A DNA stretch of 64,000 nucleotides, from the NCBI GenBank assembly GCA_038496445.1, contig JALMLS010000093.1:861710-925709 (forward strand). Direction: 5' to 3'. The DNA is from Trichosphaerium sp. ATCC 40318 (lineage: Eukaryota > Protista > Tubulinea). Positions 24,955 through 62,399 of the stretch are shown here, piece by piece. Made by a program: the position numbers and the translations under genes. Under the pieces are notes generated by a model. That model was given only the letters and a program-made list of their open reading frames with translations. It had not been told where the DNA came from and did not search any database. Each line of letters starts with the position of its first letter. Position 1 is the stretch's first letter.

Positions 24955-25749
24955 ATACTTTCCACACAGAAAAAACGTGTTTGTATATTTATTTAATGTG
25001 CCATCTTCTAATACTCTTTTTAGCTCCAACAAGCCCTGGTTGGATGATTGTGAGTACCCATGGAAACCACAACACTGAAACAAAAATTGTGGGTACTCTC
25101 ATTGGAGAACACAGAGATGTTATCTTTGGTTTTGAGTAAGTTGGTTGTTTTTTTGGTTTTTTTTTTGTTTTGTCCATTTTTTTTTTTTTTATCCATTAAA
25201 TTTTGCGTTCAATGCAACACGCGTGGCGCATGTTCGTAAACGTAGCTGTCATTTATATTTTTTTTTTATTTTTTGTTTTTTTTTTTATTTTTTGTTTTTT
25301 TTTTTATTTTTAATTCATTTCAACTAATTTATCTATGTAGAGGTGTTATCATAGCCAACCAGTTGGTTTATGCTAAAACCATGCCCATCAAGAGGATGAA
25401 GAGATGCCTAAATGGGTTTTTTGCTGCCAGCTTTGACAATGTGTTGGAGTCCCAAATAACTCCTAACAACAAGCTGAAGGCAGCATTCAAGGTACGTTTT
25501 CCGATACATACACGTTCGGGCTGTGTTCGTTTTATTTCAGTTTTTTTTTTTGATTTCAGGGCTAAAAATATTCCCAGCAAATGAACTGTAATTGCTGTAA
25601 ATTTTAGGTAAAAATTACTGTCAAATGACAAAATTTGCAGCAAATCAACAGCAAAAAACTACAGCATTTGACGGAAAATTCAGGGTTTTTACTGAGAAAT
25701 TCAGTAAACATATCAGGCATTTACTGCCATAATTTGTCTAATAAAGGAG

Positions 25750-26265
25750 TCATTTGCCATCTCAACTCAGCAAATGGTGAGGTTATTTGCCATCACAACT
25801 CAGCAAATGGTGAGGCCATTTGTCGTCACAGCTCAGCAAATGGTGAGGTTATTTGCCATCACAACTCAGTAAACAGTGAGGTCATTTGTCGTCACAGCTC
25901 AGCAAATGGTGAGGTCATTTGCCATCACAACTCAGCAAACAGTGAGGTCATTTGCCATCACAACTCAGTAAACAGTGAGGTCATTTGCCGTCACAGCTCA
26001 GCAAATGGTGAGGTCATTTGTTGTCACAGTTCAGCAAATGGTGAGAACATTTGTCGTCACAGCTCAGAAAATGGTGAGGACATTTGTCGTCACAGTTCAG
26101 CAAATGGTGAAAACATTTGTCGTCACAGCTCAGCAAATGGTGAGGTCATTTGTCATCACAACTCAGTAAACAGTGAGGTCATTTGCCGTCACAGCTCAGC
26201 AAATGGTGAGAACATTTGTCGTCACAGCTCAGCAAATGGTGAGAACATTTGTCGTCACAGCTCAA
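25750..26265. repeat. 33-bp tandem array (~15-16 copies), left subterminal region of element A
   Basis: Unit CATTTGCCATCACAACTCAGCAAATGGTGAGGT; the core ATTTGCC/GGCAAAT recurs at the right end (43880-43975). Confidence 0.9.
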
Positions 26266-26315
26266 TAAATTTCAGGGTCATAATACAATAACTAGCCTGT
26301 TTATTTCTTACACTA

Positions 26316-28762
26316 TTACAAAAACAAATAACCATTTTCTTTGTTTTTCTCCTTCAGCTCGGCAATTGAATATTTTTGTAAACACTCCAACACTTAAACA
26401 ATAATAATTAGCGCTCGTATCACAAATGAAAAAGACGTACAGCCAATGTGATGTCTGGTTAGATTTGCATTATTTTTTAAAGAAAACCGTTTGAAATAAT
26501 TGATAATTTGATGAGAACTAACAGCAAGCTTGGCATTCTTTAAAATTCTTTTCGCTATCATATCTTCTCGCTTCTACAACACAGTGTTAGCGCATAATTG
26601 ATTGTAAAGGAATAAACACCTCATTTTTAAGCTGTGCAATAGCAGCAAAAATGTATCTTGCCGTCATTTCTGCATTCTGTTGATATGAAAGGTTTTTGTT
26701 GTTGATAACTTTCATAGCGTAGTCTACATTAACAATACGTTTGTATGATTCCAAAGTTGGCATAAAATTGAGCATGCTGTGAACACTTGTTCCAGGACCT
26801 ATTACAAAGAATGAATAGTGATTGCAAAAGTAAAAATGATATCGCACAACAAATAATTACACACTCGTCCTTAGGCACAGCTATCATCGACAACCAACCA
26901 CTGTAACAAAAATAAACATACAAATGGGTCAAAAACTATACATGTTGTTTGTGTAGCAATCAAATAAATCAGTTGGATTAACAATTTTGCATCCTTTGTC
27001 GTTGTACAAAAAAGAAACTACACCAAACACCAAGCATGTGTCAGCAACCTATCAATAAATAAGCACATCAAGTAAACAATCATTACGACCTTCAATGGTT
27101 CTTCTTCGCTCAGTGGTTTGTTGAATCCAATAATTTTGTGCTCGTATGTCGTTTTACCTAAAATAATGAGCCTGGTTTTCTCTGAGTACCAACTTCAAAA
27201 CGCATACAACTACAAAAAGAAAGAAGTTAGATAACATCAAATAATAAAAAAACAGTACCTCGCTATTGCCACATCAATGTATGCCTTCATTTGTTTTGTA
27301 TTAGGGGTTCCATCTTTAGAATACAGCCAAACACAATCTTCATGTAGTTTGTTCCATGGTGAATCATTTGTTCAGAAAAAGACAATTTTGTTTGGAAAAC
27401 TTCAAGAGAAGCCTTTGAAGATACTGCTAATATGAAATTAGTATACATACACCAAAGCAAACGCAACAAACCAGGTATGAAACCAAGTGCGGAGCCAGTC
27501 ACAGTGACACCAGGTGCGGAGCCAGTCACAGTGACACCAGGTGCGGAGCCAGTCACAGTGACACCAGGTGCAGAGCCAGTCACAGTGACACCAGGTGTGG
27601 AGCCAATCACAGAACTAAGCGCAATACCATTCAAAGCAGCAGGCATAGAACCACCCAGCTCAGAACCACTTGGCACAGAATCAGTAGCACCTGTAGAACT
27701 AACAGCAAAATCAGATGTGGCATTTGCCATAGCATTATCATGTAATGAAGGTTGCGACAAATGGTATTGATCCATAAATGTGTTCATCAAGTTTGTAAAT
27801 TGATTGATGTTGTTTGAAAGCACTTCATCGTACTCATCACTACAAATCAATCAAAAATGAGAAAATTAACACTAAATTGGATCCAATACCGTACATGTAC
27901 TTGAAAGCATTATGCTTATTGAAATGGGTAGTGGCTGAAATAAAATACATATCAAACATCACTTTTCCATTCATTAACATGTCCCAATAGCTATTAAACT
28001 ACAAGTAAAAAAATTAGAAAGCGAACAAAGCAGTGAGAAAGCGCACCATTGTTGTAAACATTTCTTTTGTTTTTTGTGTGATTTTAAATGTGAGTCCTAC
28101 ACAAAATACGCGAGCATGAAAAGCTGTTTGAGCGATGGCCACTACATGTAACAATATAAGCAAAAAACTCCAACAAATAGCAACATTTACTGCATACCTG
28201 CATCCTCTTTAGAAATGCCAGGTCGTTTCGCTTTAATTGTTCTTAAATATGCCATTATGTAGCCTTTTATCTTTTTTAATAGGCTCACATATTTCGAGGT
28301 GATGACTTTTGGATTAAAAATAAACTTTCTGAGGGTTTCATCTTCTTGCCATGCAATTTTTATGTCGTTCAATGTGTTAGTTTTGTCTGTGTGGCTGGTG
28401 GCTCCGGCTTCAAAAAATGCAATGTGAATTTTGGTCAATTCTGTTGCCTACAAAAAACCATAAATAATGTACCGAAAATAATTATTTACTCGTACCATCA
28501 TTGAAACCTGAGTAGGCATTGAGTTTTTCTTTATCACATCAATTTCTTTCTTTTGGCTATTTAGCTTGTTGACGACAACATGCATTAAATCATGTACCCC
28601 TCTAAATAGCTAGTAAGTTACAGAAAATGTAAAACAAAAAAAAGAACGTAATTTTGCTTTTACTTACTGTAACATGGCCTCTATATGCTCCGGAGTCATT
28701 TGCCATTTTGGTGGTGGTGTATTTGCCATTTCATTCAAGTTGGGTGGAGTATTTGATGCCAT
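26316..28762 (-). CDS. Element A accessory gene, unknown (possible TnpA-like ORF); probably degraded at the 3' end
   Basis: Spliced exons starting MASNTPPNLNEMANTPPPKW 38 nt downstream of the transposase stop; 27-bp PGVTVTGSA repeats at ~27480-27615. Confidence 0.55.
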
Positions 28763-28799
28763 GTTGAAGTTAATATTACACCGGAGTTGACTTTTTGAT

Positions 28800-31700
28800 T
28801 TAATTTGGTATGGCATAATGGTGGTAGTTTATCAGCCGTATGCCATCTTCTGGTGTTGTATACATTTGTGCCAATTTGTAAACACTTTTTAGCTCCACAC
28901 ATGCCATTTCATTGGCAGGTTCTATCCTATTAAAACAATGAGAACAGTTTCACATTGGATAAATCCCGTACATAACAAACTCAGTTTCAGCATCATAGCG
29001 GTATTCCAAATTAGAAATGCGATAATAGCTGGTCTATGTTAGTGTATTCTTTGAAATGACAAAAAAAAAAAGAGGACGCACTCTCCAAAAATTAAGACCA
29101 TTTCAGGTCGATGTAAACTACGATATATTCTTTTGGTTGTAATGTAAATACAATTTTTTGGTCTCTTGTTGGTACGTTCTCCAAGTTTTAAACAATGTCT
29201 TCTGATACATTGACAATTTAATTGTCCCATCAGCCGATGTCGCCGAATTGTACATTGTAAACGGGCCATTTTTTATATAATCCACCAACAAAGGAAAGGT
29301 ATGCTCTATTGCAACCTTTTCACTGAGGTTTAAATATCGTCTGTTGCACTTGTTGTTGCCTAACTCCATAATGTAAATGTTGGAAAAAAAAAACATGCCA
29401 AAGTTACTTACGCAAAGTCCATGTCATCTGTGGCCTATAATAAAATGCAGGAGTTATGACACTACAAGCAGGAGTTCGTTGTTTTTTGACAACCACAGTT
29501 TTACACACTTCATCAAACTTGCCAGAATAAGAAATCATCAACCATGGGATTTCTTTACTGGCAATGTCACTAAATTTGTTAAACCAGTTAAGTTATTTTA
29601 TCAATAACAGCGTACACTATTTTATTGTGATTTTTTGAAGAGTGCTTCCAACTCTTAATGGTTGCGTGCTTAGATTCACAGGCATAAGTGCTTAATAGTA
29701 GTAAGTTAAATAAAAAAGTGACAAAAAAAATTGCCTGAAATGTTTAAATACGCCAAACTTCTTGACCATGTACTCATAGTGATAAGGTACATGAAAATTG
29801 ATTGTATCAGTGTTTAAGCCTATTTAATACACCTTTTGTAAATAAAGTATTGGAAATACAGACCGTGCCTGGAAAGTTGTTTTTTATAGCTTTCAATAGA
29901 TTTTTATACATTTCAGTAACTCTACATAAATGCCGTTGCTCCAAATAATCTCTTTGAGTCATCACTATAAATGCCAATAAACTTTTCCTTTAAATCATGA
30001 GCAACAAAAATAACAGCAATCAATAAGAACAAGTATAGTAGTACCACATTGACATCATTTCTTCTGACACCATTCCGCGAAACACTAGCAAAGCCATTTT
30101 TAAAAATGTTCTCATATCCGTGCCATCCCAGCTGTCTTTTACCATGCATCCTTTTTTGTTCCAAACAGCCTTCATCCTAGTAACTTTGTTACAATACTAA
30201 AACAAGAAATAAACTGGTCTCACTTTCCCAAAGATTTGTTTTGTCCTCGAATGTATTTTAATCATTTGTTGATGTTTCTCTTTATTTCCTCTGTTGTATC
30301 TTCTTGCTGTAATTGTTGTAGCGTGTGTATCAAGACTATTTTGGCTATGCCCAAAATGATGTTGTGAAAAGGACAATATGGTGAATGTAAAAAGAAGTCA
30401 AAGCGAAATGGCAACATCAAAGCGAATGGACTCTTAAAAAAATGGCAATGTTAGTCATTTTCCTACTACTACAACAATTACCACTTACTAGTTTTTTTAC
30501 GCCATAGCAGCTTGTGATGTGTTCATTGTAGTTGAATCTATTTAAATCATCAAGTATTTTCCAGGTGTTTCTTTGTTCTCGTTTAACATCAACTGTGTCA
30601 GTTACCATTGTAAAAGAATCTTTTGCAATCCTACAAATTCTACACGGATAGAAACATGTGGGACTTTTCATGGCTAATCAAAATGAGTGAGATAAAAGAT
30701 AAATAGAAAAAAAATAAAGTTGTTCTTACATATCAGTTTATTGGAACCAGGAGAGTCGCCGAATATCATTGTTAATCTCAAAAACACTGTAAAATACTAT
30801 GTACAATAAATATCTACAATATGAACCATTACTTGGTACCTTTTTCTCAGCCGCAATATAACATTTGATTCCAGAATAAATACGCAAAAAATCATCTACA
30901 ACATGCTTCAACAAATCCTCTTCGTGGTGACATTTTGGCAACACAGACAACATCATTTTTCCCGTTGCACTAGCACTATTTGGCATATTTGAAACAACCA
31001 TGTACAATGGTCCAAAACTGTCTTTCTTGTCATAAGTGAAGTCGTCTTTGCTTATGTATGCTTTTGAAAATGACAATAAGTACTACAAAAAATTTATTTA
31101 TTTGTACCTGGAAGCAATATATTGTTTGTTCTATCCTGTTTATACCTTTTTAAAACATCGGCAAATATGGTTTTAATATTAGAACCAGTTTCAGGACCTC
31201 TATAAACTGGATGTGTTGTGGTAGCTCCATTTACAGTAACAGAAACTGTGGGAAGATCGTCAACAATACACTCTGCAATGCTGTCTCTTCCAGGAAGATG
31301 GTAAAGCGCGCGTTTTATGTGGTCTGATGGAGAATAAAAAGGAACCTTGGTGTTGGAGAGCATATCTCCATTATCACTTTTTTTTGAAACTAGGATTTCT
31401 TTTGTCGGTTTAAAAGACAATAAAAACTACATTACTAGTCAGGTTACATGGGTAATAATTCTGTTGCTTGCCTTTTCTTTAACATGTTTGAACAGCGTAT
31501 CTATGCAACATGAAATTATATCTAAAATAAAGGTTAAAAGACGGACAAAAAGCTTCAAATATCAATACCCTGATGTTTCACTCCAAAAAGCATCAATGAG
31601 GTGTTAAACAGCGTCAAAATTTTTTGGCAAAGCACTTTAGAAAGCTTGTGTTCCATTTTTAGAGCTAATAATAGATACCCAAACTTTTCTGCTGGAGTAG

Positions 31701-32263
31701 CAGTTGATAAAGACGCTTTTGGTTTAAAAGCGGGAGGACTTTTGTTCTCATCAAATGCTATACATTGCATTAGTGAATGAAATTTATTTGATATTAACTT
31801 CTTACCGTCGGAGTCATTTAAAGCGTTGTTTGTGAGCCAAGGTTCAAGGATGCCATCTCTAATATCTGCATCATAATTGTCTTCAAAGTCAATGTGGGTG
31901 TAGCTATCGCCACTGCTTATACTGCTAAAATCCGCAATCTGAGTTATCACCGGCTTCGTCGTAACTATCTCCGTCATCTTCAATGTTAAAATGAACTCCT
32001 GACTTTACAATATCATTTAAATGAATGTCTCCATCTAAATCATCATCAATTGGCATGTTTTGGTTTAATAGATCAGACATTTCTTAAAAAGAGATGAATT
32101 TAGCTGTGAATATAGATTTAAAATGACATCTCATACCTCTATTTGCCATTGCGGCCATATGTTTCGAAGTATTAACATGTTGATAATAAAAGTACTGTTG
32201 ATTGTAGTGTTTGTGGCATATATTGCAATAATCTGAGTCAGCCACAGCACTGTTTGAGGCCAT
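28800..32263 (-). CDS. Spliced DDE transposase, CMC/Plavaka-like, N-terminal C2H2 zinc finger (apparent frameshifts at ~31930 and ~29155)
   Basis: CNICHKH...QHVNTSKH; YISKDDFTY (D1); IFGDSPG (D2); YPCRIC; CPFHNIILG; HVPYHYEYMVKKFG; YACESKH (E). Confidence 0.8.
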
Positions 32264-32366
32264 GTTAGTTAAAATTGTATTATCACTTCGTGATTAAGTC
32301 AGAATGTTTGTGCAAATAAAATTAAAACAACTGATGAATTGATGGCAGTTTATTGCTTTACCTATA

Positions 32367-35300
32367 TCAAAAAAAGTTAACTTCATCATAAGCAAAGGAA
32401 GAGTAACAAAATTCGTACATTATTTTTTCATTAAAATTTGACAAGTACTCTTCTTTTAATTTTGTGTAACTATCTTCTCTTGCGACAATTGCTCTATCAC
32501 TTTCTTTCATTTGTTTTGCCGTTAATGGAGGAATCAATTTGTGTCTGTTGCAACAAGCACAGTTTGGCAAAGTGGAATTTGAAGTCCAATCAGATCTTTT
32601 CTGGCACCTAAATATAAAGTACGTTTGATTCCCGCTATAACCCCAACCATGAAGGTAAGCTTTCACAATCAAAGCTTTTTCATAATCTATTGCAATAAAG
32701 TTAACTATTGGTTTTAAAAAACGGGCTCATACCTGGTGTTGTCTTTCCTAAAAGTGATAGTGCCAAAAATAAATAAGTTGATCCTGTCCAACTGTCGGTT
32801 GGTTTTTGTTGCAATTGCAAAGACCTGTTGGCCAAGCCTACAACTTTTTTGAGTGTGACATCATCATCAGATCCTTGTATTATGAATATATTGTTGTCAA
32901 TGTACCTACAATTACCATGTCATCAACGAGGGGGCAATTTTAATGCAAGGAAAAAAAAAATAAGAAAAGAAACTCACTCTTTGTTTACTATGACGCTTTT
33001 TGTTATAACCTTCAATCCCGGCTTCAATTTTGAATGTTTACTACCATGCATACATGTGTATATAGTAGAGATGAGCTGAAGTTGTTTAAATCTAGTAAAG
33101 CTTAACTAATTAAAAAGGAAACAAATAAGGCTTTACCCATTTTTATCATATCGCAATATGTCTCCATCGTCCAACATCAAATTGTTATTGTCATCAATTT
33201 CTTTTTTTCGGGCCAAAGACAATATGCAATGCATATTTGCTTGTACTTGTGGCATGTTTAAAGGTACTTTAAGCCTATGATCCCATCTGATTGGTCTAAA
33301 AGGGCTTCTTTTCATAGTTGCCATTAACTTGTGCAATTTAAGCATTTTTGTAGCGACAACATTAGAAAACGGCTAAACACACAACTTAGCTAATCAAAAT
33401 GTGATTGTACTGGTACTGTACCTCATCATTTCTTTCCACGTGTCGTAACACAACTGTAAAATACTGTGTACGGGCTGTAGAGTAAGCAGTTTCAGGACAA
33501 CTCACTGTTACTGTATGAGGTATGCTCATTGGACTTTTAATAACAGCGCCTTCTTCATCTTCTTCTACACCGTGCAAGCCCCATACAAATTGATTTCCAC
33601 TTACATTAATTGTGTCGTCAATGAGAAGCTTTTTTGAATAATGACTTTCATTGTTCAGTGCTATAGCAGCACAGGTAAAGCCGCTTCTTTCATTCATTGC
33701 TCCTCCAGTTCCATCACAGTGTCTTTCTAGCTCAGCATCTTTCTCTGTCCACCCTTTTAAAAGGTCAAATTGACGAATTATTATTACAATATTACCTTCA
33801 GTTCAACATGCAACTTGGAGCAGTCTTTTTTATAATCCAACCCGTTCTTTAAACCACAGGCATAATGAAATGAAATCAAAGGTTCAAGCAATTGTTTGTC
33901 CTCGTCCTCTAAACGGTATGTAGTGTCACAGAAATTATTGCCTTTTGTGACTCCTGAAACTGGAGCAATCCAACCCACACATTTTTCGCCATCTTTTGTT
34001 TCTTCAAAAGAAACTGAAGAGTATGGACTGACATAATATGGAGTGTTGATATGTGTGTCAGTGTATGCTTTCAACTTGCATGTAGATTAGTAATAAGCCA
34101 ACAAAGGAATGTGACAGTCAAAAGGGGAAAAACATACCCTGTATCTTAGTTTTTTGACATGACGTTTAACAAATTGTGTTAATTTGTTGTGAATGGTGCC
34201 ATCATCCAACGCGTTCAATCCACTGAGCTGTGCATAGTACAAATACACACCTATTGGTTTTGTTGGTTCAATAGAATCTTTTTGGTCAGGTAATTTAGTC
34301 GCTCTAACTGCATCACTTGCGTAATTGTAAAATCTTCCTAAACGAGTTGCAACTTTTTCTTCATCAACAAGAGAGCTCTCCAATATTTCTTTGATCTTTT
34401 GTTGGTCTGACAATTCTCGTTGTAATTTTTGGGAGTCTATTATGATCTCGCTTGAAGTCATACCCACTTTAAAGCATCTAATAGCAGCATTTAAAGTTCT
34501 AACTGTAGGTGGCCTTCTTAATTTTGTTCCTCTATGTCCTAACTTTTGTTGTGCCACCTTATGTATAGCCACGGCACATTTATAAACATCAGAAGCTTGT
34601 AAGCTCATTGTTTTGGTAGCCTATGATGAAGTTAGCAGACAACAAAGCTAACACCATTATTTAATAAAGCACCTTTTCCAATGTTTCGTAAAATGACTCA
34701 GCTGTCGGAATTGGCGCATTTGCTCCAGAAGAAGCTCTAAGTATTGTTTTCAATCTTTTGTGTCTATGCTCAAAATGTTAAAAGGTGATAAAATCCATTG
34801 CCGCTTTGTACCTATTGTCTACTTCCAAAGATATGTCTACTTGTTGCAACCAATCCTGTAAATTGTTTTTACTTGGTTTGTATAATTCTTGAGTCACAAC
34901 GTCTGCCAATAATCCATATAACTTCTTTTCTGTTGAAACTATATCAGCTACATATTCTTTTTCTACATAATTCTGTCTTAAATGGTATTGTTAACAAAAT
35001 ATTGAAAGTAGAATTAAGCACCTATTTTTTGTTTTTTGTTTCTTCTTTTTGACATTCTAACAATTGTATTTAGTCGTGTTTTTTGTATAAAACAATTGAA
35101 GTACCATAATAAAAGCCATTTGTACTCCTCTTGTTGGCGGTCGCTTTCTTTTTTTATATTTATACAGAACTTCTCCATCATCTTCTTGGTCAATATCTGA
35201 CATTGATTCATCACTCGATGTGCCACATGATTTGCTCAATTGATCGCCAATAATTCCCTTGTACAAAATTAGCAAGAATGTATTAAAATAGTGTAATGTA

Positions 35301-35802
35301 CAGCTGTTGGTAGATTGCTATCATTGTCACTATCATTATCACTGTCAAAGCTTATGTCATCTGTATTTTCACTTACAGCATCTTTGTCAACGCCGTCTCC
35401 ATTTTCAACGCTGTCTCCGTTTTCTATGCTGTCTCTGTTTTCTATGCTGTCCCCATTTTCAATGCCGTCTCCATTTTCTATGCTGTCTCTGTTTTCTATG
35501 CTGTCTCCGTTTTCTATGCTGTCCCCATTTTCAATGCCGTCTCCATTTTCTATGCTGTCTCCGTTTTCTATGCTGTCCCCATTTTCAATGCCGTCTCCAT
35601 TTTCTACGCTGTCTCCGTTTTCTATGCCGTCTCCATTTTCTATGCTGTCTCTGTTTTCTACGCCATCTCCATTTTCTATGTCGTCTTCAACTTCACCTTC
35701 AATGTTTACTTCAACGATTGCATTATTTACAGCCTGATCTCTTTCATTGGATGGTGGAACTGTTATGAGGACAGTTCTAGATATTTGTCTTCTTTGCTGC
35801 AA
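32367..35802 (-). CDS. 2OG-Fe(II) dioxygenase-like domain fused to an SRA-like domain (element A copy; ends approximate)
   Basis: RHCDG (HxD), FVWGLHG, PHTV (distal H), FTVVLRH; then MHGSK...GLKVI...ANRSLQLQ. Collinear with 53748-56430. Confidence 0.65.
35390..35680 (-). repeat. 18-bp coding tandem repeat (IENGDS/G x ~16)
   Basis: Repeated ATAGAAAACGGAGACAGC-like unit within ORF 35269..35802. Confidence 0.9.
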
Positions 35803-36436
35803 TATCTGGGCAGCTCTACCACGTCGCCTGTTTGAAACTCTAATACCAAACTTAAATCATGTTTAAGGGGGAACTTATGTACTTTAAGGTATTACCATTG
35901 GCAGCGCATTACATTGCTGTTACACATAAAGGAGGAACTTATGACTATTAAGCCATCCACCATTGGCAGCGTAATACAGTTGTTGTATGTGAGAAATAAA
36001 CTTGTTACTTATGAGGGCAATCTAACTGTTAAGGCACTCACTTAATGCACTAATTACATTACTACTTACCATTGGCAGCGTATTTGACTACTTTAAGTTA
36101 GTTGTGAAATAGTTCACAAATTACACGTCATCATTACACAACTCTTTCTTTTTCTAAAAATCATCTCTTATTGGGGTAATCTCACTGTTAAGGCACTCAC
36201 TTAATGCACTATTTATCATTACTTACCATTGGCAGCGTATTAGAGCACTTTAAGGCAACAGCAAAGCCCATGCGAGCTGCAAATAACCTGAGTTTTCTGG
36301 GAAATCTTTGAGCTGGTATCAAAGATTTCCACCTTGTGACTACACAAAACTGGTTCTTTACTTTATGTTACAGTTTTATTATTTAGGATGTTTCACTAAG
36401 TTTCACTAATGGGGGTAATCTAAGTGTATTAAGTAA

Positions 36437-47400: not shown

Positions 47401-47451
47401 AAGAATTTGTTACGAAATTGTTGTTTATTTATTATCCACAACAGTACTTGT

Positions 47452-49559: not shown

Positions 49560-51605
49560 CGTAAAAAATAACAGATTACGATGTGGATTATGATGTGGAT
49601 TATGTTCTGACTTAATGTGTTTGGTTTTTGTTCATCATATTGACATCTAGATGAGATGAAAGATGCGACACGTATGGTGATATGTCATATTGTTAAGTTA
49701 TACAATATATTTCTTTGAAAGTGTTTTTGTTTTGCAGCTACATTTGTTTATCGTAGGTTGGAGTCAAATGACCTAAATTTACTTACCAATAAGTTATATA
49801 GTGATTGTTGATGTGATCTAACGGACCTAAAGTGTTAAACGATGACAAACATCAAAAAAAAGCTATAAAGCGTTAAATTAGGTTATTTTTGCGTAGAAAA
49901 AAGACATGGTGCATTTGTAATGTTGTTTGGTTCAACATAGAAATGTGTTGCGTTGAACTGATCAGTCATGAACAATTGTGCTTGTGAACAGCATCAAATT
50001 CTTGTTTTGAGCCATTTCCGACAGACGAAACTGAAAGTAGTGTAATATGATTTTTTATAGAAGTCATGGTTGTTTCATGAATCCATGTTCCCTTTTGACA
50101 CAACCAATTGCTTTTTACTAGCTCTTTTGCCAACACCAGAGACCATTGAAGTGCTTAAAGAGCTTTTATTAACATAAAGGACTTGACACAAATAAGCAGG
50201 CATTGGGATACTTTGAAAACAAAGATATCACCAATGTTATAGCAAAAGCAACAACAAGTGACTTGGTTGACAGGGTTGAACTCAAAGTGGCAGTAAAGAT
50301 GCTCAAAACAGTATTCAAAGAGAGAGTGGTGTTCAAACTGGTACTTTCCAATGCGATGTATGTGATATCTCAACTAAAGACAAGCTGTAAAAACTATATA
50401 CAAGTGTTAACAGAGGCTGTTTGTAGCACTTGCTCACGAACTAGTATTGAACGCGAACGACTTATCCATCACGGTTCAATTTGACAGTGTAGACCTAAAA
50501 GAATGACGCACAATCAAGATACTTCGAAGACATCTTAACAGCCTGCTATACATTGCTAAAGTTATCAATGGCAGACACTGGACATATAGAAATCAGTGTG
50601 CATGATAACTTACCTTTAAAAGTAAGACCATATCATCTGTTCAGGTTGTCAGGGTGATACACAGCATTGTATTGGACGACGTTGAAGATAAATCGCACCT
50701 TTCACCATCAAGTGACTCTTTACATCACACAAGTCTGGTCACTAAAGACAAACCATCATTCTGAAACAAGTAAAACGTACCAAAGCATGAACTGTCTGTG
50801 TTGATTGCTCAGTCTGTGTTTGTTGTGATGGCTGCATTGGCGTTGCTTATATTGCTTGGACGGCTTGAACGGCTTGAACAGCTTGAACAACCTGAGGTAC
50901 CAGCTTTTGTGATGTCATATTGTTAGAGTTATTAGGATTAATGCCATTAGCTTGTTTTCTGACTGGCGACAGTGCTGCTGAGGCTGTTTGTGTTTGTGCA
51001 AAAGCGACTAAAAGTAAGAAATGAGTGAAATTTATGAATAAAATTTGTACATACTCTTTCATAGCATAGCTGTGGGTAAACCACCGTTTAGTGGCGTGTA
51101 AGCTACATGTGGAACGTTTTGAGCCATTGTTGCACGTTGAGGCATATTTTGAGAGATAGCGCCCATTGCGTAACTGTACACCACTACACAACGCAGTTAG
51201 TAACGCAAAAGTACTTTGAGGTGGCATACCGCCTTGAAGCGATCAAATTAGCTCTAGCAACTAGCTGCTTGTTGCATTGCAACATGGTTCACCAAGAAAG
51301 TTGTTTGTTGTGGCGACATGTCCTTTGTAGAAGCTGTTTGGGTTCATCGTATGTTGTCTTACGCCCGTATTTGCTGTTTATTCAGCAAGTAGCCACTAAA
51401 GGCATTTTGTGATTCTGGGTTTTTAACCTCTATTGCTTGTGTTGGTGCGACTTGTTCATTTCCTTGCACACATTGTTCGTTTGGCGTCATTTGTGCAGGT
51501 GAACCTGTTAGTTGCGCATTGTTTGCAAGTTGCGTTTGCACAATTTCACCTTTAGTCCTGCCGGACCAAAACAAAACGAAACAAATACATGAATAAAGGT
51601 TTTAT

Positions 51606-52682
51606 TTACTTGGTCAAATCTATTACTTCTTTTTTAATCTTATATTTGCCAGTTTTCATCTTTAAGATAAAAAGATCGGTACAATTGAATTTTACTTTGC
51701 GTCCTTTGATGTACCTATAACCCGATTCAAAAGTGTTGGTTTCATCATAGTTACGCGTGTGTCCATGAAGGTATCCATTCTTATAATTTCGTACAGTTTG
51801 TCTGCTACCGTTTTCACGAAAGCGTTTGAAGACCACCATTGCACCGTTCTTGTATTCACATACCTTACGTACATTTCCGCATGGATAATATGCAGTCAGT
51901 TTTCCGTGTTTTACTCCTTGATGGAACGGTATAATGCGAACTATTTGGTTGTTCTCGTAAAAACGAGCTTGGCCGTGTTTCTTACCATTGACAACGGGTA
52001 CTGAAGCAAACAAGTTACCTTGACTATACAAACGTTGTAATCCATCAACATGTCCACCAAAAAAGATACGAGTTCTAGTCTTGTTTCCGTTCTTGTCGTA
52101 GTCTGTAGATTCTCCATGTTTTACTCCAAGAGAGTACTGCTGGTCAAGTGCAACACTTCCGTCTTGAAAGTAATGCACATCTTTACCGTGTTTCATACCC
52201 TTTTTATAGTCCGTCTTTGATTTGATAGTGCCATTACGAAAATACTTGATAAGTTCAGATTCCAGAGAACCGAATTCTATTTTGCATTTGCTTATCAGCT
52301 CGCCAGAATTGTGATATTGCTTAAATTCACCGTGATACACTCCATAATAATAATTTCCGTGTGTGTATGTGTCGTCTTTTATGAATACGGCAGGTCCATG
52401 TGGTGATCCTCGACGATAACTACGCTTACCACAAATAGGCTTGTTCCAATTTTGTGTCCAAGTTCCTATCGGTTCCAAATCCTCATTAAAACGCATTAAT
52501 GCCAAATATTTGCATACTAGAGGCATTAACACATACGCTTCATAGGCAAATGAACAAATGAAGGCAATCTCCTTCAAGGAAAAGTCTAACAACGACTATC
52601 GTTTGTTAGTGTTGGAAAAAACTAAATTCCGTACGTGACAGAGTTGACTTGGCGTAGTTTGTAGGCGCTTTTGATTTTGCAT
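51606..52682 (-). CDS. MORN-variant (YwqK-like) repeat protein with degenerate F-box-like N-terminus
   Basis: Repeats YxxGxKHGxxxxYxxxG; N-terminal LLDFSLKEIAFICSF...LMPLVCKYL; one short 5' intron, then a ~990-nt exon. Confidence 0.8.
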
Positions 52683-53747
52683 GCTAATCCTAAGTACATT
52701 ATTAGTTCGTGTTTTGGGATTGTACAAAAAAAGAACAAATCACATAAATAAATACTCTTGTACTAAAAATGGGTGCACGTCCTCAATGTTGTTTTGTTTT
52801 GTACGTTTTTGAGGAGTTCTACGCGTTTAAAGCGAAAACGCGGTTCTTAGACGATTAAAGTGGAAATACACTTTAAACGCACTTGCCACGCACTTGAAAC
52901 TCAAAAATATAGGCAAATCGTCCTTTTTCTAGTTTTAAAAACAATTTTTGTGCACTAGCCATGGAAATGCACTTTAATGCTAAAAACCGCTAAAATTAAG
53001 AGACTACGTACATTTTTTGCAAGAAATACTCGTTTATTTACTAACGTCGCTATTTTATGGTAAAAAGATGAGAATCAACCTTATACAGTACGTACATTAT
53101 GTGTTAGGCGTATTTAGGCGTCTATTCGTTGGTTAGAAGGCAAAGTAAGAAAGAAAAAACTTAAGCTGGTTCAAAGAACCACCAAAAGTCGCATTTGGTG
53201 TAGAATAGCGTTTTACGCTATTTAAACCTGTACAATAGCTTTACACAAGGTACGTAAGGTGCTACAAGAAGTTTAGGTTGATTTGTTTACTAGAGAACCT
53301 ATATAATCGAAGATTTGCGTTGGAACAGTACGTTTCTCTATTTTACATTGCATTTAACGTAGCGTTGGTTATGTTGCACAAGTTTAGATGTTGTGTTGTG
53401 TATAATGCATCAAGTCGTGAGCTGCAAGTCTTAGTTGTTGCAGATGCAAAGCGTTTGTCTTCTATACGATGAGAGTAAAACAGTGTAATGAAACTGCGTT
53501 GCCAATGCAGTTGCAATAAAAACGACTGAGGTATCGTTTTGAGCGAAAAGAAAGCTACACCGATGTTCAGATACGTTTGAAGAGTTTTCGTCAAGGAAAA
53601 GTACAACAACGTTTAAAACCGTTGTTAATGGCAATGTTAACATGCAAGATTACAATGGTGGTGTCAAATGAGCAATTTTGTTATGCTAGTGAACATTTAC
53701 ACTTATTTTTTGATTAAGCGTACTAACTCAATTTAGAATTGTTGATC

Positions 53748-56430
53748 ATGAGCGTAGAAACACCCAACAAGAAACGGTACGTCAACAAAGCACAAGTTTG
53801 ATTGTAACTTTATTAATAGCAAACGTTCAACTGTCAGTTCTCACACCAGCTCTCTTAAAGTAAAATTTCATCAACCTGCAGCTGTACTAATGCGTGTGCT
53901 TGGTTTAACACTCATTGTTTTCTTTAGCCATCAACGTATGCAACTGAAGCTCAAATTGAAGACTTAACGAAACAGCTACAAGTAGCTTGCAAGTCTGTGG
54001 CAAGTGTTTGTGCCACAGTATCAAGCATTAGCAATTTTCCGTTGTCTGGTAAAGGTTGGATCCTTACCAAAAAACACATCAAACAAACATCTAACAACGA
54101 AGACGTGAGAACAATATTAGCCACAGAGACTCCAAATTGTCTTTTATCCAGCAATTATATTTCAGCAATTAAAAAGGTACGCTTACATCATCTTTTTTTG
54201 TTTGTATTAACCACAATTGCATAGGCTGAAAGCCAAAGTACTTTCACAGTACTACAAATTCACAATGAGGCAATGTACATGGCAACAAAGGCTACGCAAC
54301 CTGGACAAACGATATCACTGGTTCCAAGATTAGCACATTGCGCGATCGTCTCGTTGAAACAAAATGGATCTGTTATTCCTACACAAGAAGACGAAATGCG
54401 AATGATCGACAGCGCTCGAACAAGCTCGAGAAATAATATCATTGTTAAGTTAGATGTGAATGTACCCATGAAAGGTTTCATCACAAGGCAAAAAATAACA
54501 GGACAACGCCACAAATTAACAGCAGGTGCAAGAAACAGCATATATTTGTATCATGTGCCGAATGAAGATAATGTGCAAAGTATACTTGGCTGTTGTAAGC
54601 AATTTGCAATGAAAAACTCGCATCTCTTAAGACATAAGGTACATACGATAGTTTAATCGTATTGTTTACTTGATTTAGATAATAGCAATAGACAGTAAAT
54701 CTGCGTTTACTGCGTATAAAATTAAAAAACAAAGAAGCTGGTTTTTCAACTCATCATGGATTGTTCCGTTTACTGGTAAAATGGCTGGCAACAGACACAT
54801 GTTCAATTGGTCAAAGACTGATGCGCAGGACAATATTCTTTTACAGCCTTTGATCGATTTGCACATGACGATGAGCAAAAATGCAAATAGTCGCGATTTT
54901 AATGAACAGGGAACTCTTTGCATCAGCTTAAAAGTAAGCAAACGTTCAAACAGTTAACTCGTAACATTATACTAGGAATACATTCCAGGTTGCACAGGAA
55001 TTCCCTTTCATGTTGACGGTGGCATAAACAGCCACGTAAATGAAACTAATGGCATCACTTGTTTTGGGTTTACATTGCGAGATTCTATCGACTGTAATTT
55101 AAAAACAATAGAGGTTGAAGGTAAACTGCAAGTAGTTGTTCATCACAGTTAATTGTATCATTAGGAAGCCACAAAACTCACATTTTAACAGGCAATAACT
55201 TTATATGGGCATTGCATGGTAGTTGTGCTAATGGCAAAGGCGCTGGAGGAGTAAGACACAAACTAGACATAACTGAGTTGCAACACAAACAAAGTGTCTG
55301 GACCATAGTATTACGACGCATGATTTTACACACAGGAAAGGTTTGTGCTAGAATCCAATGTTTACAACTTTTTTCACATCACTTTAGATTGATGACGCAA
55401 TAGACAACAAAATTGCTTTTATAAACCAACTGAGCGCTTCTTTGAAACAATATCCAAATTTAAAGCCGTTGAGCCATAAGTTGGAGCTAAATACCTCATC
55501 AATTCGATACCAGGCAAACAAACATCTTTTGTTAAATGTGTTGGAGCTTCAGGCAACCCAAGGTTTACCAAAAGATGGATTATTTTGTTTACATGAAGGA
55601 GATTTACTCATGTCTGACTGTCACGCCTTGTATGCTTTGGGCTTGTACAATAATCCATACTGGGCTTTGCATGGAAATAAGAATGTTGGTTTGAAGGTTA
55701 TCATCAAGCCTGGGATGTATAACAATGAGTACTTTTATTCTTCTTTTACAGTAGCTTGTTGATTGTTGTTTTAGAATTGTACACAAAAATTGGATGTTAG
55801 TTCGTTTAAGTGACCACAAAACACACTACAATAGACAAGTGGATTACATCAAAAAATCTATTGAATTACAAGCTAAGCACCCTACTGACAGATTTAAAGG
55901 CAAAACGTACACCATTTTACCTTTAAATGCAACCAACGCAGATGTTGAAATACAAAAAAAATATCAATGTGAATTTCCAAATTGTACGTCAGTCCGATAC
56001 TCAATTTGCTAAACACATATTTGTGCAGGTTCAAAAGCAATTGGGCATGTGCAAGAGTGGTATGTGCATGGCATTGTGTACAATTACCAAGAGCGCATTG
56101 CTGTCTTTAGAAGAGAGCGCAGACAAAAAATGGCTTTGTTGGAACCTTTTGAAATAGTCGAAAAAGATAAAACTGACAGCTTCACTTTAGTAGACACCAG
56201 CTTGACATGTGAATGTTGTTTATACAAACCCAAATTTATTACCACCTTTATGTTCGAACCTACACAAGCACCTGTCGATGTAGATCATGAAGCAAACACT
56301 GCAGCATTTAATAGTGCGGTCAACAATTCAACGGTACTTGTTTTGATCCATATACATTGATTTTCAGCTTAAATTCTGTTTGTAGACTCTTGCAAAGTTT
56401 CCATTTAACATGCACAGCTCACGTGTATGA
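53748..56430 (+). CDS. 2OG-Fe(II) dioxygenase-like (AlkB-like) domain fused to an SRA/YDG-like domain (element B copy, core apparently intact)
   Basis: LKEYIPGCTGIPFHVD (AlkB-like xYxPGxGIxxHxD; HxD at 55009-55017); FIWALHG; VRHKL; WTIVLRR; then GLYNNPYWALHGNKNVGLKVIIKPGMYNNE (55640-55729). Confidence 0.7.
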
Positions 56431-56525
56431 GCAGCCTCATAATTGTTAGTTACAAGTCAATAAAAATGGCACAGAAATACGACGACTTTAAATAAATAAA
56501 GATATTTTTTCACTTGCAACTCTAA

Positions 56526-59500
56526 ATGAATCAAAGGTATACTTGCGTGGCTTGTAATACCTGTTTATGGCGAAGCAATCGTGCAAGACATGAACAAACA
56601 AGTTTACACAAAAGCAACTTATTACTGCGAACAATATCAAATAATGCATTACGTACTAGATCAGAACCTAATGGCCACAATTACGACACAATTAACTTAT
56701 TGCGTACTTGTTTTGTCAAAACTCCCTGAAACTAACTTATTTAGCTTCTTTGGGCGTAGAAACAACAAATTTGCAGGACAATGTTACAAATTGGGTTGAA
56801 AATACGCCATCTTTTATCCATCATCCAAACCATCCCGAAACAATGCTCAGCCAGTCAATTATCTCCAAAACTACTCATGACAACAACCTTACAGAAAATG
56901 ATCAACGCGTTGAAAATCAAAATGTAAACTTATGTGAACGTACAGCTGTTAGAATACAACAAATGGAGTTTGTTACAACTTTGCAATCGAGCATTCCGAC
57001 GATAGAAAATGCTTCAGCAACTGACCAATTTTTGTACTTGGTACGAAAACTGCAACTAGAACAACAATTGCCAGATGAAAATGTCAAGCTATGGTTGAAC
57101 TTTTTCAAAACAGCTGAAACGATCTTCAATCAACAAACCAGATCTTTCGATGCGACAACTTCTCAATCGCCGCTTTCTTTTTTCGAAAACAAATTGAGTG
57201 TTGCTTCCAGTAAAAAAACTTTTCAAAAGGTACAACCAATCACACTTGTTCATTGTATTGTTAACATCACTTCAGTACACCCCAAAACTCAACATGCAAA
57301 CCATACGCATCAAAACTACAAATAACTCATTTATGGAAATTCCGTTCATTCCTCCATCTGAATATGTGAGATTGCTCATGTATCATTTGGAAGATAGAGA
57401 CAGCATAAATGACAACTCTAAATATCCACACAAGGTGGATAGAGCTGATGTAAATGGCGATATCACCAATGTGCAAATATTCGAAGGCCCAGAAACATCA
57501 CAACGATACCACGATATGTATCTTGATGTAGAAAAAACAAAACAAAACATAAGGCTTGCAGGTGCTGTTCAGCTTTGACGTTCCTTCTGTTATAACTTTA
57601 AAGTTTAGCTTATGTCTGCCATGATGATTTTACATACGATAAAAAGGATAGTTTTGGTCCTATGTATCTGGTTATTTGGAACATGCCAAACAGCGAAGAA
57701 ATGCAAGGGAAAATGACTTTGTTTGTGTTACCCACCAATGTAGTGATGGCAAATGCAATGAAGTATGTTGTAGATGACATTGCAATGATGTATGATGGCA
57801 TTGAACTTCATAGCCCCAAATTGAAACGTGTACGAACACTTTTATTTCATTGTTGTTCTTTACTCTAATTGTTACAGACTTTCAAAGTGTACTTAAGATT
57901 GGAAAAAATACTAGGAGACATGCCAGGAACATGCAAGGTTCTTTGTACGTTAAATTAATTACAAATACTATGCTAAGTTGATAGCTATAAAAAACCATGG
58001 TTCCAACCTTCCGTGCCGCGTTTGTGACATATCTAAAAATGGTTTAAAAAACCTGCAAAATAATTACAAAAAACGAACAAAGGATCAAGCAATCATTGTG
58101 TACAATAACCATAATATGTCCAACACCAACAAGCTATATTCTTTGTGTTTTAATGCCTTTGTACGTAATTACAGCTTTACAAACTCTTTGACACTGTTTG
58201 TAGTCACCGTTTTTGTTTCTACCCAATTTTGACATTTTCCAACATTCTCCTTTTTGTCCCTTCCACAATATTCTATTGGGTATTTCAAAACAGGTATTAA
58301 TAGGCACACTTGAAATGCTTCAAGAAAAGCATTCAAGGGCTGTGCAAAAACAAATTAATGCCAATATCGAATGGTATAAAAAGCAAAAGCACGTTTCTAT
58401 CAACAAGTACACGTTTGTTTACATGAATTTATCATTAACATTGATTTTAGAATGAAAGCAGTATGGGATAAACAAGGAGACTTGTGTTTGGTTCAACATG
58501 GTTGGGATGGAGCTGATACAAGATCTTTTTTGCAAATGGCATTGTTTGTGTTCAGGTCGTTCAGGTCTAAAATTTTCGAGCTGTTTTTATGGTAGATACC
58601 ATGGATTTGTGGTATAATTATACCATTGATTACAATTTTATACCACAAATTCCAGTATAATATACCATAAATCAAAGGATTTATACCATAAAACAGCCAA
58701 ATTATACCATAAATATGCAGTAGAAAGTGCGAATTTATACCATATTTTTTCACCTGAAAAAATGCAATATATGGTATAATTCTACCATAAAACACGGTAT
58801 AAAACACAGTATAATACCACAAAGTCTGGTATATTATACCTTAAAACTTGGTAGATTATACCACAAAACCAGGTGTATTATACCGTGTAAAAACTGTTCT
58901 AATAATAAAACCACATTTATTAATACATTTTTTTGTTTACATCCGTGACCTTTGGTTTTGTCCATATCCTCTTTTGTGGTAGTTGACACATCAAATAACC
59001 TTCAAAAAAAATATTGTACTTGCTGTAAGTGCATCGAATGGACATAGCATGAAAACTAGAAGAAGAATTAGTGAAGGCTTGATGCACAAAATAAATAGTT
59101 GTACAAAAATTGCTGTTTTGTTGTGGTGGCAGCACTGGGAGTAACAAATGACCTGTGTGGTGGAGCCAAATCAAGACTAAAACAAAGAAATGAAAATAAC
59201 TGCCAACTTCATCGGAAACAAGTTCTAGCAGAATCGTACCTGTTAGTTAACACATCTTGGTTTTTTTTTTATCATCTATCTAGCTTGGTTAAAACCTATG
59301 GCAAGCGGCTTCAAAACAACTACTTTTAGCGTACCTTGTGTTGTGTGGGCGATAAACTGGACAAGACTTAGTTTTGTGCTCTGACTTAGCCAATTGGTTT
59401 ACAATATCACTCGTAAGGTCAACGCATGGGTGTGAAGCCTAAATGCTATCTGTTCTGGCAAATGCGGGCGTTTAGTAGGGAAAAATTCAAAAAAATCCAA

Positions 59501-61807
59501 AAAAATCCAAAAAAAACCAAAAAACTCAAAAAATGGGTAGGCTCTGAAACAACTTGGCCTTATAGCACTATTCACGCGTTTTAACATGCATTGGAGCGTA
59601 TATCAAAAATGTCAAAAAAAAATAAATAATTTTGCTCCTGATTTGGTAAATGAGGCTGTATGGCGTTGATTGAATGTAAAAATGCCTATGGAGGGGAGAA
59701 AAAAATGAGAGCGGGGAAAAAAACCTCCAATTGGAGGTTTTTTGCGAATGGGCATTTTTCAAGCGCTAAACGCGTTTTTGGTGTGTCTACCACTGTAGCG
59801 TTCTAACATGGGGTACGTGGAGTGGTTTCTTTCTCAAATACTGTCAATCGGAGAAAATTGGCCAATTTATCCCTAAAACGCCCGCAATTGGGGCACGTTA
59901 CCAGATTTCTCTCTTAAAACTGTTTTTCACACATTTATATGCCAATTATGTTCAATAACGGCTACTGTCAAAGCATTGTGTGGTATGGCGTTTGCGTAGG
60001 GCCAAAGGCTATTAAATCAAGTATAGACCAAGTGAGCTTTGACTAACTTATACTTATACGGTATAATACCACGGTATAATACCACATTTTATGGTATAAT
60101 TATATGGTATAATGCACGGTATACTATACTTTAAAATACAGTATAATACCATGGTATAATACTGTGTTTTATGGTATAATTATATGGTATAATGCATGGT
60201 ATAATATACTTTAAAATGCAGTATAATACCATGGTATAGTACCATGTTTTATGGTATAATTATATGGTATAATGCATGGTATAATGTACTGTAAAATGTG
60301 GTATAATACCATGGTATAGTACCATGTTTTATGGTATAATTATATTCTATAAATTGAAATATGGTATAAACATGGTATAATGGCTGTTATACCATTTGTC
60401 CAAAAAACATGGTATTATACCATATTTTATGGTATAATTATATGGTATAATTATGGATTATACTGAGCTTGTACCATAAAAGGTGATTATACCATAAAAT
60501 ACGGTATAATACCATGATAATTTTCAGACCTGTTGTGTTCGAAAGCAGTAATGCAAACATGGTACATCACAAAAAAAAAAAAATCCAATATTCATCACTT
60601 TAGGTGCGCTTTATTGAGTTATATTGCCCTCATGTCTAGAAGTTTTCTACAAGAATACAAATTACATTTGGTCACTCATGCAGCCCTCAGTTTAAGAAAT
60701 TTGGTAGCAATTAACTTACCAAGTAAGTCTTGAAACTTATTTAATTGTATTGACAATATTTTGAAAGATGTAAATGTCACAACTCCTAACTTTCACGTTA
60801 TTGTACATCATGAAGATTTTATACGGATGTTTGGCATGCCAAAACATTATAGGCACAAAACAATACATTTATGTGCTTTTTAACACCTTTATTAGCACGT
60901 ACAGTTGTGAATCTAAACATAGGAAAATAAAAAATTGGAAACGAAGCACCAAAGGCTGCAAAAAAATACGGTACATATACCTTTTCGACTGTTAACACGA
61001 GTTTTTGTAACACATTTTAGAGATATAATGGCAAGAGAAAGTGATTCTATTTCTTCCTATTTTGCTGGGACGTTTAGTAAAACAATGAATAAATTGTCTA
61101 GCAACGAGCAATGTGAAATCGACAAACTCTCCAACTTTTGTTATTTGGCCAAACGCCTTCTCAACATACCTGAAGCTAAATGGACTCTTCGTACTGAATC
61201 ATTTACAAGTACACTGCATTGATTGTACTTTTAGATAATAGACAGTTGATTCGGTTTGCATTTTTGTCTCAAAAATTCAAAACAGCATTAAACAATGACA
61301 CAAACGAACGTGGCATTGAAGACACTTTACAAATTGCAATGTATAACTCTGCCAAATGCGCTCAAAGAGAATTAGCTATTTGTGCTTCTAAAAATACTTG
61401 TTTTAAAACTTGGAGACCGCACAAGTTCGAAACAAGAAGTGATTGCATTTACATTGAAACAACGGCCATTGTACAATTGCACTCTCAAGGAGAAGTTTAC
61501 GTATTTGGCAGGTAGCAAAAAAACCCTTTAAATTGATTTGTGATCGGATACTAATTCGAATTCAGATTGTTTACGATAAAAGATGTTGCAAATAGATATG
61601 ATGAAATTACAGAACTGGTAACGTGCGTACACAATTGTCACATTGATTCATTTATTGAATGCGTTTAGAATCATTCACAATGAAGATGAACCATGCGCTT
61701 GTGTCCCATTATCCATGATATATAGAGTTGAATGCATCATTCCACATCCTGATGCTGAATCGAACATTTACTTGGTGAATTACTACCAAAGAACCATTCC
61801 CAAATAA
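56526..61807 (+). pseudogene. Spliced CMC/Plavaka-like DDE transposase with C2H2 finger, interrupted by element C
   Basis: CVACNTC...RHEQTSLH; YVCHDDFTYDKKDSFGP; LGDMPG; LPCRVC; CPFHNILLG; HVIVHHEDFIRMFG; YSCESKH. Paralog of 28800-32263. Confidence 0.85.
58562..60532. mobile_element. Element C: 1971-bp non-autonomous CAG-terminated element
   Basis: TIR CAGGTCT(G)AAAATT; TSD TT (58560-61, 60533-34); GGTATAAT/ATTATACC subterminal motifs (80-bp period at ~60088-60340). Removal restores FRSLCSKAVMQTW. Confidence 0.92.
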
Positions 61808-62399
61808 ACATTCGTACTTATATATATTTGGTGAAACTTGTCGTAATTTATTATGCTTTTGGAAATAAACAGTAAATCCTAAGGAATCCCAAGAATTATC
61901 GGATTATTGTTGGAATCCTGTGTAAAATCCAATGACAAATAAAAACACTTTACGGATTTTTATCTAAATTCCATTAAAATCCTGAAAAAAACAGGAATTT
62001 GACTGGATTCCAATTAAAAATCCGTATTTTATTTTACTACTGTGAGGTTGAAGATGAGGTTTCAGAAGAAATCCAGCTGCAAAAAAGACCAAGAAGAAGC
62101 AGCAGAGCACATGGGTTGTTCAAAAAATCAAGTGAGCCTTGGTTTGAAAGTGTAGTAACTCACAGACCGATCGTACTCGGTACGAACACGATCGCGATGT
62201 GTTGGTTTGTTTTTTTTTTTCCCTTTCTCTTTTTTTTTTTTCATAAACCAATGTACCAGTTGATGTTATTTAGATTCTGATAAACCACAGCCTTCTACAT
62301 CAAAACATGATGTAAATAAAAGGTCAGGACCAACAAAGATGACCACAAGAAGCAGTCAAAGACTAAAACGAGGTACGTTAACTGCGAACACATATTTTC

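Follow-up and report, generated by a model that had tools for sequence, protein, structure and literature searches.

The CMCT clade of class II transposons groups EnSpm/CACTA, Mirage, Chapaev, Transib, Plavaka and ESTA as well as Lanisha, and gave rise, by way of Transib, to the V(D)J recombinase RAG1 (Kojima 2025, PMC12730594); ESTA, Lanisha and CNEST have been described only in the last few years. Members of the clade combine a DDE catalytic triad with C(2)C, C(2)H and H(3)H motifs, mostly have CA..TG termini and generate target-site duplications (TSDs) of 2-5 bp (PMC12730594). Duplications of 2 bp are made by Mirage and PlavakaA/B (PMC12730594), as well as by ENS1_Cis of Ciona savignyi and by CMC-NA miniature inverted-repeat transposable elements (PMC6004678), and the fungal EnSpm-like ESTA/CNEST elements have TA duplications and start with CACGG (PMC12730594, PMC12810828). 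Here we describe three elements, named A, B and C, in a stretch of 64,000 nucleotides from Trichosphaerium sp. ATCC 40318 (contig JALMLS010000093.1, positions 861,710 to 925,709), all of which was analysed and which we call the window; coordinates below are those of the window. We consider it likely that A, B and C form a single cut-and-paste class II family with terminal inverted repeats (TIRs), in which A and B encode a multi-exon DDE transposase of about 1,400-1,700 aa with a CMCT-type zinc insertion in its RNase-H-type core. Their transposase is very divergent, and rather than a new type of element they probably represent a little-sampled branch of a known one.

Boundaries, target duplications and subterminal repeats

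The three elements, nested or neighbouring, lie within one host gene, referred to as host gene X, and are delimited as follows.

25557-44017: element A, 18,461 bp, ends TT-CAGGGCTAAAAAT...ATTTTTACCCCTG-TT; putatively autonomous
25555-25556 and 44018-44019: TT flanks of A, in an intron of host gene X
25557-25570 and 44004-44017: TIRs of A, 13/14 matching
47061-62042: element B, 14,982 bp, ends TG-CAGTAGTAAAATC...ATTTTACTACTG-TG; in a coding exon of host gene X
47059-47060 and 62043-62044: TG flanks of B
47061-47074 and 62029-62042: TIRs of B, 13/14 matching, with arms reaching 49 nt at 71%
58562-60532: element C, 1,971 bp, ends TT-CAGGTCTAAAATT...AATTTTCAGACCTG-TT; non-autonomous
58560-58561 and 60533-60534: TT flanks of C, within a coding exon of the B transposase

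Aligned from the outside in, all six termini read CAG-N3-T-(A/G)-AAA (ends CAG...CTG), and the TSDs are 2 bp long: TT for A, TG for B and TT for C. An earlier note, made from the letters of the window, had placed the three elements at these same positions with these termini and duplications, and its boundaries prove exact, which in the case of B and C can be verified through the interrupted reading frames. When B is deleted in silico together with one TG, a long open frame is recovered across the host exon (...EDEDEDEVEDEVSEEIQLQKRPRR...; ...EEKEDEDEDEVEDEVSEEIQLQKRPRRSSRAHG...). Similarly, deleting C and one TT opens the B exon (...ALFVFRSLCSKAVMQTWYI...), which is colinear with the paralogous exon of A (...ALLVFRGMVSEEMMSMWYYY...). 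If B or C is left in place, a stop codon is met 9-13 codons on. The ends of B and C and their 2-bp duplication are therefore exact to the base. As for A, its removal shrinks the host intron 25493-44203 to about 248 nt, like neighbouring introns. These observations support A, B and C as three related TIR transposons with 2-bp TSDs. What the earlier note had missed is that C lies in a coding exon, not an intron, of the B transposase, and that B lies in a coding exon of the host gene.

We also evaluated how often such ends arise by chance, by counting CAG/CTG pairs with an identical 2-bp flank in the real window and in shuffles, according to the number of TIR matches out of 14. With at least 13/14 matches and the same flank, two pairs are found (A and B), whereas 100 shuffles yield 0.16 pairs on average and never more than one. 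With at least 12/14, there are six real pairs versus 1.8 expected from shuffles, and TIRs and TSDs by themselves are thus weak evidence. The pairs 13684/29343, 33821/53528 and 37216/43522 match at only 12/14, which is the level seen in shuffles; as nothing else about them is transposon-like, they were rejected.

Dense subterminal repeats, also reported in the earlier note, are confirmed: they are concentrated at both ends of A, B and C, each element having a motif of its own.

25749-26264: left array of A, 33 bp x 15.6, each unit with CAGCAAATG / CATTTGC
25567-25680 (left) and 43866-43990 (right): related GCAAAT motifs of A
47164-47398: left array of B, 23 bp x 10, ATTCCGTAAGGATTTAGAGCGGT
58589-58889 and 60052-60523: subterminal repeats of C, GGTATAATACC-type units

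In A, 21 of the 37 GCAAAT/ATTTGC matches of the element fall within the first 1 kb. AGGATT/AATCCT motifs (TCCGTAAGGATTT-type) are present at both ends of B, with GGAATCC / AATCCT in the right terminal 150 bp.

The ends of C also look like splice sites, CAG/GTCTAA on the left (58562-58570) and TTTTCAG/ACCTG on the right (60520-60532). Splicing at these sites would take out the greater part of C yet leave 10 extra nt, hence a frameshift, and would not rescue the B transposase.

The transposase gene of A and B

A single gene, the transposase gene, is common to A and B.

28800-34620, minus strand: transposase gene of A, >20 exons, introns of about 45-70 nt; approximate model
54273-61807, plus strand: transposase gene of B, interrupted by C; exon spans approximate, from the model

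According to tblastn, stop-to-stop open reading frame (ORF) pieces are colinear between A (33972-28806) and B (54757-61801). Both genes were modelled with a home-made splice-aware dynamic programme that scored codons by log-odds, allowed GT-AG introns of 38-130 nt and rewarded conservation between A and B, C being removed from B beforehand. The resulting models have 34 exons and 1,698 aa for A, and 23 exons and 1,415 aa for B, with no internal stop in either. They are approximations, in which uncertainty attaches to the 5' exons and to some junctions. The two proteins are 33% identical over 1,111 columns of a local alignment, and their C-termini are conserved (...IP(N/K), with the stop directly after in both). 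A and B thus carry paralogous, intron-rich large genes, as had been proposed in the earlier note; the four peptide motifs that it quoted occur once each in A (minus strand) and in B (plus strand), in the same order. As the A transposase reads through intact in its model, A may still be active and is a possible candidate for a transposition assay.

A probable GC-AG intron is conserved in both genes (A 29734-29691, minus strand, 44 nt; B 60853-60895, plus strand, 43 nt), where it joins the H(3)H and E blocks described below in frame; a GT-AG alternative would drop a stretch that is conserved codon by codon, FGVFKHF in A and FGMPKHY in B. Upstream of the A transposase, an acidic tandem repeat (35272-35856, minus strand, 18-bp unit x16) encodes ENGD(G/S)I... 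and is joined by the model as 5' exons of the A gene (up to 35963). B has no counterpart of this repeat, whose membership in the gene is uncertain.

Both genes present the same order of candidate catalytic and zinc-binding residues, namely D, D, C(2)C, C(2)H, H(3)H and E, preceded by a finger motif.

32137-32285, minus strand: C2H2-type finger exon of A, CNICHKHYNQQYFYYQHVNTSKH, upstream of the catalytic core
56526-56726, plus strand: B counterpart of the C2H2-type finger, CVACNTCLWRSNRARHEQTSLH
30804-31061, minus strand: first D exon of A, DDFTYDKKDSFGP...NMPNS...VLPK; 49% identity to B 57608-57865
57609-57829, plus strand: first D exon of B, DDFTYDKKDSFGP, same as A
30786-30730, minus strand: second D exon of A, IFGDSPGSNKLI (FGDSPGS)
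57878-57944, plus strand: second D exon of B, LGDMPGT
30673-30489, minus strand: C(2)C exon of A, PCRIC
57985-58160, plus strand: C(2)C exon of B, PCRVC
30265-30432, minus strand: C(2)H exon of A, HSPYCPFHNIILGIAK, CPFHNI; 62% identity to B 58204-58359
58204-58412, plus strand: C(2)H exon of B, CPFHNI
29616-29819, minus strand: H(3)H and E of A, NFHVPYH and YACESKH..IK.WK, split by the probable GC-AG intron
60768-60852, plus strand: H(3)H of B, NFHVIVH
about 60906-60920, plus strand: E of B, SCESKH

D, D and E follow one another in the expected order, at D1226, D1309 and E1533 in the A model (with C1328/C1331, C1399/H1402 and H1517/H1521) and at D864, D946 and E1208 in the B model (with C965/C968, C1031/H1034 and H1192/H1196). 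The residues around this core also seem to echo those of plant CACTA transposases: D(G/D)F...(W/G)P...N(L/M)P, D.P(A/G)...(A/Y)P.C..C, xxH..(N/G) and E(R/S)....(L/I)K. In both proteins, the first Cys lies at +19 from the second D, and E lies at +20 from the second His once the GC-AG intron is used. These spacings equal those of mouse RAG1, which are likewise +19 and +20 (D600, D708, C727/C730, H937/H942, E962; PMC4914335). The conserved C2H2-type finger is a candidate DNA-binding module on sequence grounds; its exons have weak zf-C2H2 / zf-DBF matches in Pfam, below cut-off.

Relatives of this gene are scarce. A profile of the first D exon compared with 1.84 billion representative proteins, from libraries that are mostly prokaryotic or metagenomic, has three true matches, which are metagenomic fragments of 76-126 aa (P0001, P0002 and P0004); a fourth match, to a repeat protein, was rejected as spurious. 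The 9.2-kb metagenomic contig encoding P0002 (L002), a divergent relative, carries the first D motif and a second-D motif, ILGDIPGSNALI, followed by intron-like sequence, as in A, and stops just past the second D exon, before any E. It has no informative CAG-TAAAA end and no informative tandem array. Back-translated scans of metagenome contigs (conducted twice) and of viral and prokaryotic genome contigs recovered no relatives. The transposase family thus occurs elsewhere, though it has hardly been sampled.

Proposed mechanism and placement among known transposons

In the mechanism that we favour, the N-terminal part of the transposase, including the C2H2-type finger, would bind the element-specific subterminal repeats, and this binding would bring the CAG...CTG ends together. 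The DDE site would then cut at the CA/TG termini and, by analogy with Transib/RAG, the flanking DNA would end up with a hairpin. Attack on the target by the 3'-OH ends would occur 2 bp apart, and repair would yield the 2-bp duplication, with no requirement for TA (TT, TG, TT). C should depend on a third transposase, because it is devoid of coding capacity (no ORF >76 aa) and has its own subterminal motif; it would have been moved in trans by a cognate enzyme encoded outside the window.

Placement in the CMCT clade is suggested by several features. A and B have C(2)C, C(2)H and H(3)H motifs located after the second D and ahead of E (PCRIC/PCRVC, CPFH and HVPYH/HVIVH), CA..TG termini are found at all six ends, the 2-bp TSD is within the 2-5 bp range of the clade, and the elements are large with subterminal repeats. 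The CMC-type assignment made in the earlier note thus holds at the level of diagnostic signatures, i.e. a putative DDE triad with C(2)C, C(2)H and H(3)H in canonical order, RAG1-like spacing, CA..TG and a 2-bp TSD. Unlike most of the clade, however, A, B and C have G as their third terminal base (CAG...CTG) instead of the usual C, and the transposase of A and B is very long, cut by >20 short introns and without detectable similarity to any Pfam transposase model.

A number of points weigh against this placement. The assignment draws on short motifs and their spacing, partly within a home-made gene model of which some junctions are uncertain and one requires a non-canonical GC donor. The termini are CAG, versus the CAC that is usual in CACTA, Mirage, Chapaev and Transib. 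The length of the A duplication is ambiguous, its flanks fitting either TT or a 3-bp TTT, and the window contains one copy each of A, B and C, so that their boundaries are without confirmation from further copies or empty sites. No transposase family was detected in Pfam, at E<=1 or E<=10, with 20 exon-sized pieces of the A and B genes (scanned singly) and three database fragments, a silence which rules out only closeness to families that Pfam models. PDB profile searches with the first D and C(2)H exons returned nothing relevant. The AlphaFold2 model of the first D exon is poor (pLDDT 59) and shows only a beta-beta-beta-beta-alpha-beta succession, with no Foldseek match in PDB at E<=0.001. 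No described transposase was thus matched with statistical significance, be it in sequence or in structure, by the searches made.

Each described family can then be compared with A, B and C. EnSpm/CACTA elements sensu stricto have CAC(TA) ends and a 3-bp TSD, whereas here we find CAG and 2 bp, and the A and B exons, in the same single-piece scans, match none of the CACTA Pfam models (Transposase_21 and related). Maize En/Spm is similar in that it is multi-kb, has numerous short repeats near its ends to which a protein of its own presumably binds, possesses non-autonomous derivatives and inserts into genes, but differs in its 3-bp TSD, its CACTA termini and its Transposase_21-type protein that Pfam recognizes. 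The 15-18 kb of A and B is within the CACTA range, and the term 'giant' used in the earlier note was overstated. Mirage and EnSpm elements of the ENS1_Cis type share with A, B and C a 2-bp TSD without fixed sequence, short TIRs and CA-initiated termini, but their ends are invariably 5'-CAC...GTG-3' (PMC6004678). Mirage and the animal EnSpm elements with 2-bp TSDs are possible homes, set apart by their CAC ends; the CAG ends argue against Mirage, not decisively. ESTA/CNEST elements likewise have a 2-bp TSD, a length of at least 7 kb, recent activity and a CMC signature visible by motif alignment only, with no Repbase match, but with a TA duplication and a CACGG start instead of TT, TG, TT and CAG. 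The fungal Plavaka A/B elements resemble A and B in their 2-bp (or 2-3 bp) TSD, passenger genes and C(2)C / H(3-4)H signature, but their termini are TGT..ACA (A) or CATCA..TGATG (B) and they sometimes carry TET/JBP cargo; the A and B exon scans gave no Plavaka-type Pfam match, and neither element contains a TET/JBP gene. Finally, Transib makes a 5-bp TSD, against 2 bp here.

The earlier note had inferred a distinct cargo-carrying lineage. We see somewhat less than an even chance that A, B and C represent an uncatalogued CMCT lineage, characterized by CAG...CTG ends, a TAAAA box 3 bp further in, 2-bp TSDs other than TA, subterminal arrays particular to each element and a transposase of at least 1,400 aa with >20 introns that has RAG1 spacing and no detectable similarity to described families, recently active and ferrying lineage-specific passenger ORFs. 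If this were true, a CMCT branch combining the exact zinc-ligand spacing of RAG1 with CAG termini and a 2-bp stagger would provide a data point on the evolution of end recognition and target-cut spacing. Alternatively, the elements could work by the same mechanism and be ordinary members of a catalogued CMC family, most plausibly Mirage or the animal/fungal EnSpm elements with 2-bp TSDs, their orphan look being due to the scarcity of eukaryotic transposon proteins and to the lack of Pfam models for Mirage and Chapaev; we regard this as a serious possibility, somewhat short of an even chance. The 2-bp TSDs already known in the clade (ENS1_Cis, CMC-NA, PlavakaA/B and Mirage) are consistent with it, as are the composition of the protein libraries, from which the window's own ORFs are absent, and the fact that new CMC branches without Repbase match are still turning up, e.g. 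CNEST (PMC12810828). It is harder to reconcile with CAG, not CAC, at six ends, with the mere three short fragments recovered from 1.84 billion representatives, and with the failure of every Pfam model to see any exon.

Other superfamilies have to be considered as well, and one of them involves a transposon nested in A.

36434-39011, plus strand: nested transposon in A, 2.58 kb, perfect 15-bp TIR TAAGGGGGCACTCTG at 36434-36448 / 38997-39011, AG/AG flanks
36657-38690, plus strand: ORF of the nested transposon, single exon, 677 aa, Mutator-like transposase PF20700 (E=2e-27) and C-terminal F-box (E=6e-5)

That A, B and C belong to the hAT superfamily seems to us very improbable. The A end CAGGGCTAAAA resembles the hAT terminal consensus (that of Ac being CAGGGATGAAA), hAT transposases likewise have a C(2)H motif past the second D, and CPFHNI(I/L)LG of A and B presumably resembles the hAT 'C.aH.LnL' block. 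However, the hAT YARNG pattern is not followed by the termini of B (CAGTA) and C (CAGGT), no exon matches the hAT dimerisation domain (PF05699) or BED, and C(2)C at 19 residues past the second D, like H(3)H at 20 residues ahead of E, is typical of CMCT/RAG1 and not of hAT. In addition, hAT elements make TSDs of 8 bp, rarely 5-7 (PMC12730594), whereas the duplication here, established to the base for B and C, has 2 bp. We give just as little credence to the view that the large protein is not a transposase, A being moved by the Mutator-like and F-box protein, or A and B being PIF/Harbinger-ISL2EU elements. PF20700 is indeed the only transposase domain recognized by Pfam in the region, and ISL2EU elements make 2-bp TSDs. 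Yet the Mutator-like ORF has its own perfect 15-bp TIRs, which bear no relation to the CAG ends, it is missing from B, and the sole gene common to A and B is the large one with the DDE signature; no DDE_Tnp_4-type Pfam match, expected for ISL2EU and its PHIS relatives, of which Harbinger has a Myb-like second ORF as well, was obtained with the exons, which contain the C(2)C/H(3)H insertion instead.

Passenger genes, host gene X and surroundings

The earlier note had credited A and B with several cargo genes. Passenger ORFs do exist, but this claim was overstated, as the largest ORF in A belongs to the nested transposon and the rest are orphan or low-complexity, none being common to A and B. 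Since it is bracketed by its own perfect TIRs, the Mutator-like and F-box ORF is an independent nested transposon and not cargo. Two database relatives were found for its protein, one of which (P0005, on L001, from an unrelated sequencing run) is 27% identical to the 677-aa protein and has the same two domains, so the fusion of transposase and F-box seems, judging from these sequences, to be conserved. The other passengers are several orphan ORFs and the following.

40466-41629, plus strand: passenger ORF of A, Thr/Pro-rich with mucin-like tandem repeats, 388 aa stop-to-stop
42690-43767, plus strand: passenger gene of A, at least 3 ORF segments, the first with an F-box-like motif (Pfam F-box E=0.009, below curated cut-off)
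51609-52592, minus strand: passenger ORF of B, 328 aa, MORN_2 repeats (Pfam E=4e-13)

Relatives of the MORN_2 ORF are only 24-30% identical to it. In a self-BLAST, the passenger regions share no DNA with the rest of the window and give no sign of captured host gene fragments.

A and B are inserted in the same host gene, the former in an intron and the latter within a coding exon.

about 24040-25492, 44204-47060 and 62045-about 63350, plus strand: host gene X, multi-exon, with acidic and basic low-complexity tails

Two exon pieces of host gene X were scanned against Pfam and have no match. As B interrupts a coding exon, this allele of the gene is broken, and the open frames on both flanks of B suggest a recent, possibly polymorphic insertion. 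C is located in a coding exon of the B transposase, about 30 nt upstream of the donor site of that exon. Thus, C knocked out the B transposase and B knocked out the host gene, with no order of the two insertions implied; both look recent because the interrupted frames are otherwise intact. The locus is therefore a natural record of recent activity, in which one element disrupts a host exon and a non-autonomous one disrupts the transposase of the former. For annotation purposes, 35 kb should be masked as transposon and host gene X modelled across A and B.

Host gene X also contains an introner-like repeat, with cores at 24654, 24794, 24937, 44094, 45105, 45664, 45966, 62413 and 62875. Its unit of about 95 nt consists of a palindromic core, GACCGCGAGCTCGCGGTC, with inverted flanking motifs AACACG...CGTGTTCG / CGAACACG, for a chance expectation of 0. 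All nine copies are in introns of host gene X, none being found in neighbouring genes or inside A or B, and three copies have a GTACGT donor located 15-25 nt upstream. The pattern resembles intron gain or expansion that is driven by a transposon or a repeat and limited to host gene X.

The window is eukaryotic in character (GT-AG introns, 31-43% G+C), and neither tRNA genes nor Rfam families were found in it. A Pumilio-family gene with PUF repeats (E=2e-31) is present at about 17.8-21 kb. Between this gene and host gene X, the intergenic DNA contains a short interstitial telomere-like repeat, (GGGTTA)x4.7, at 22322-22349.

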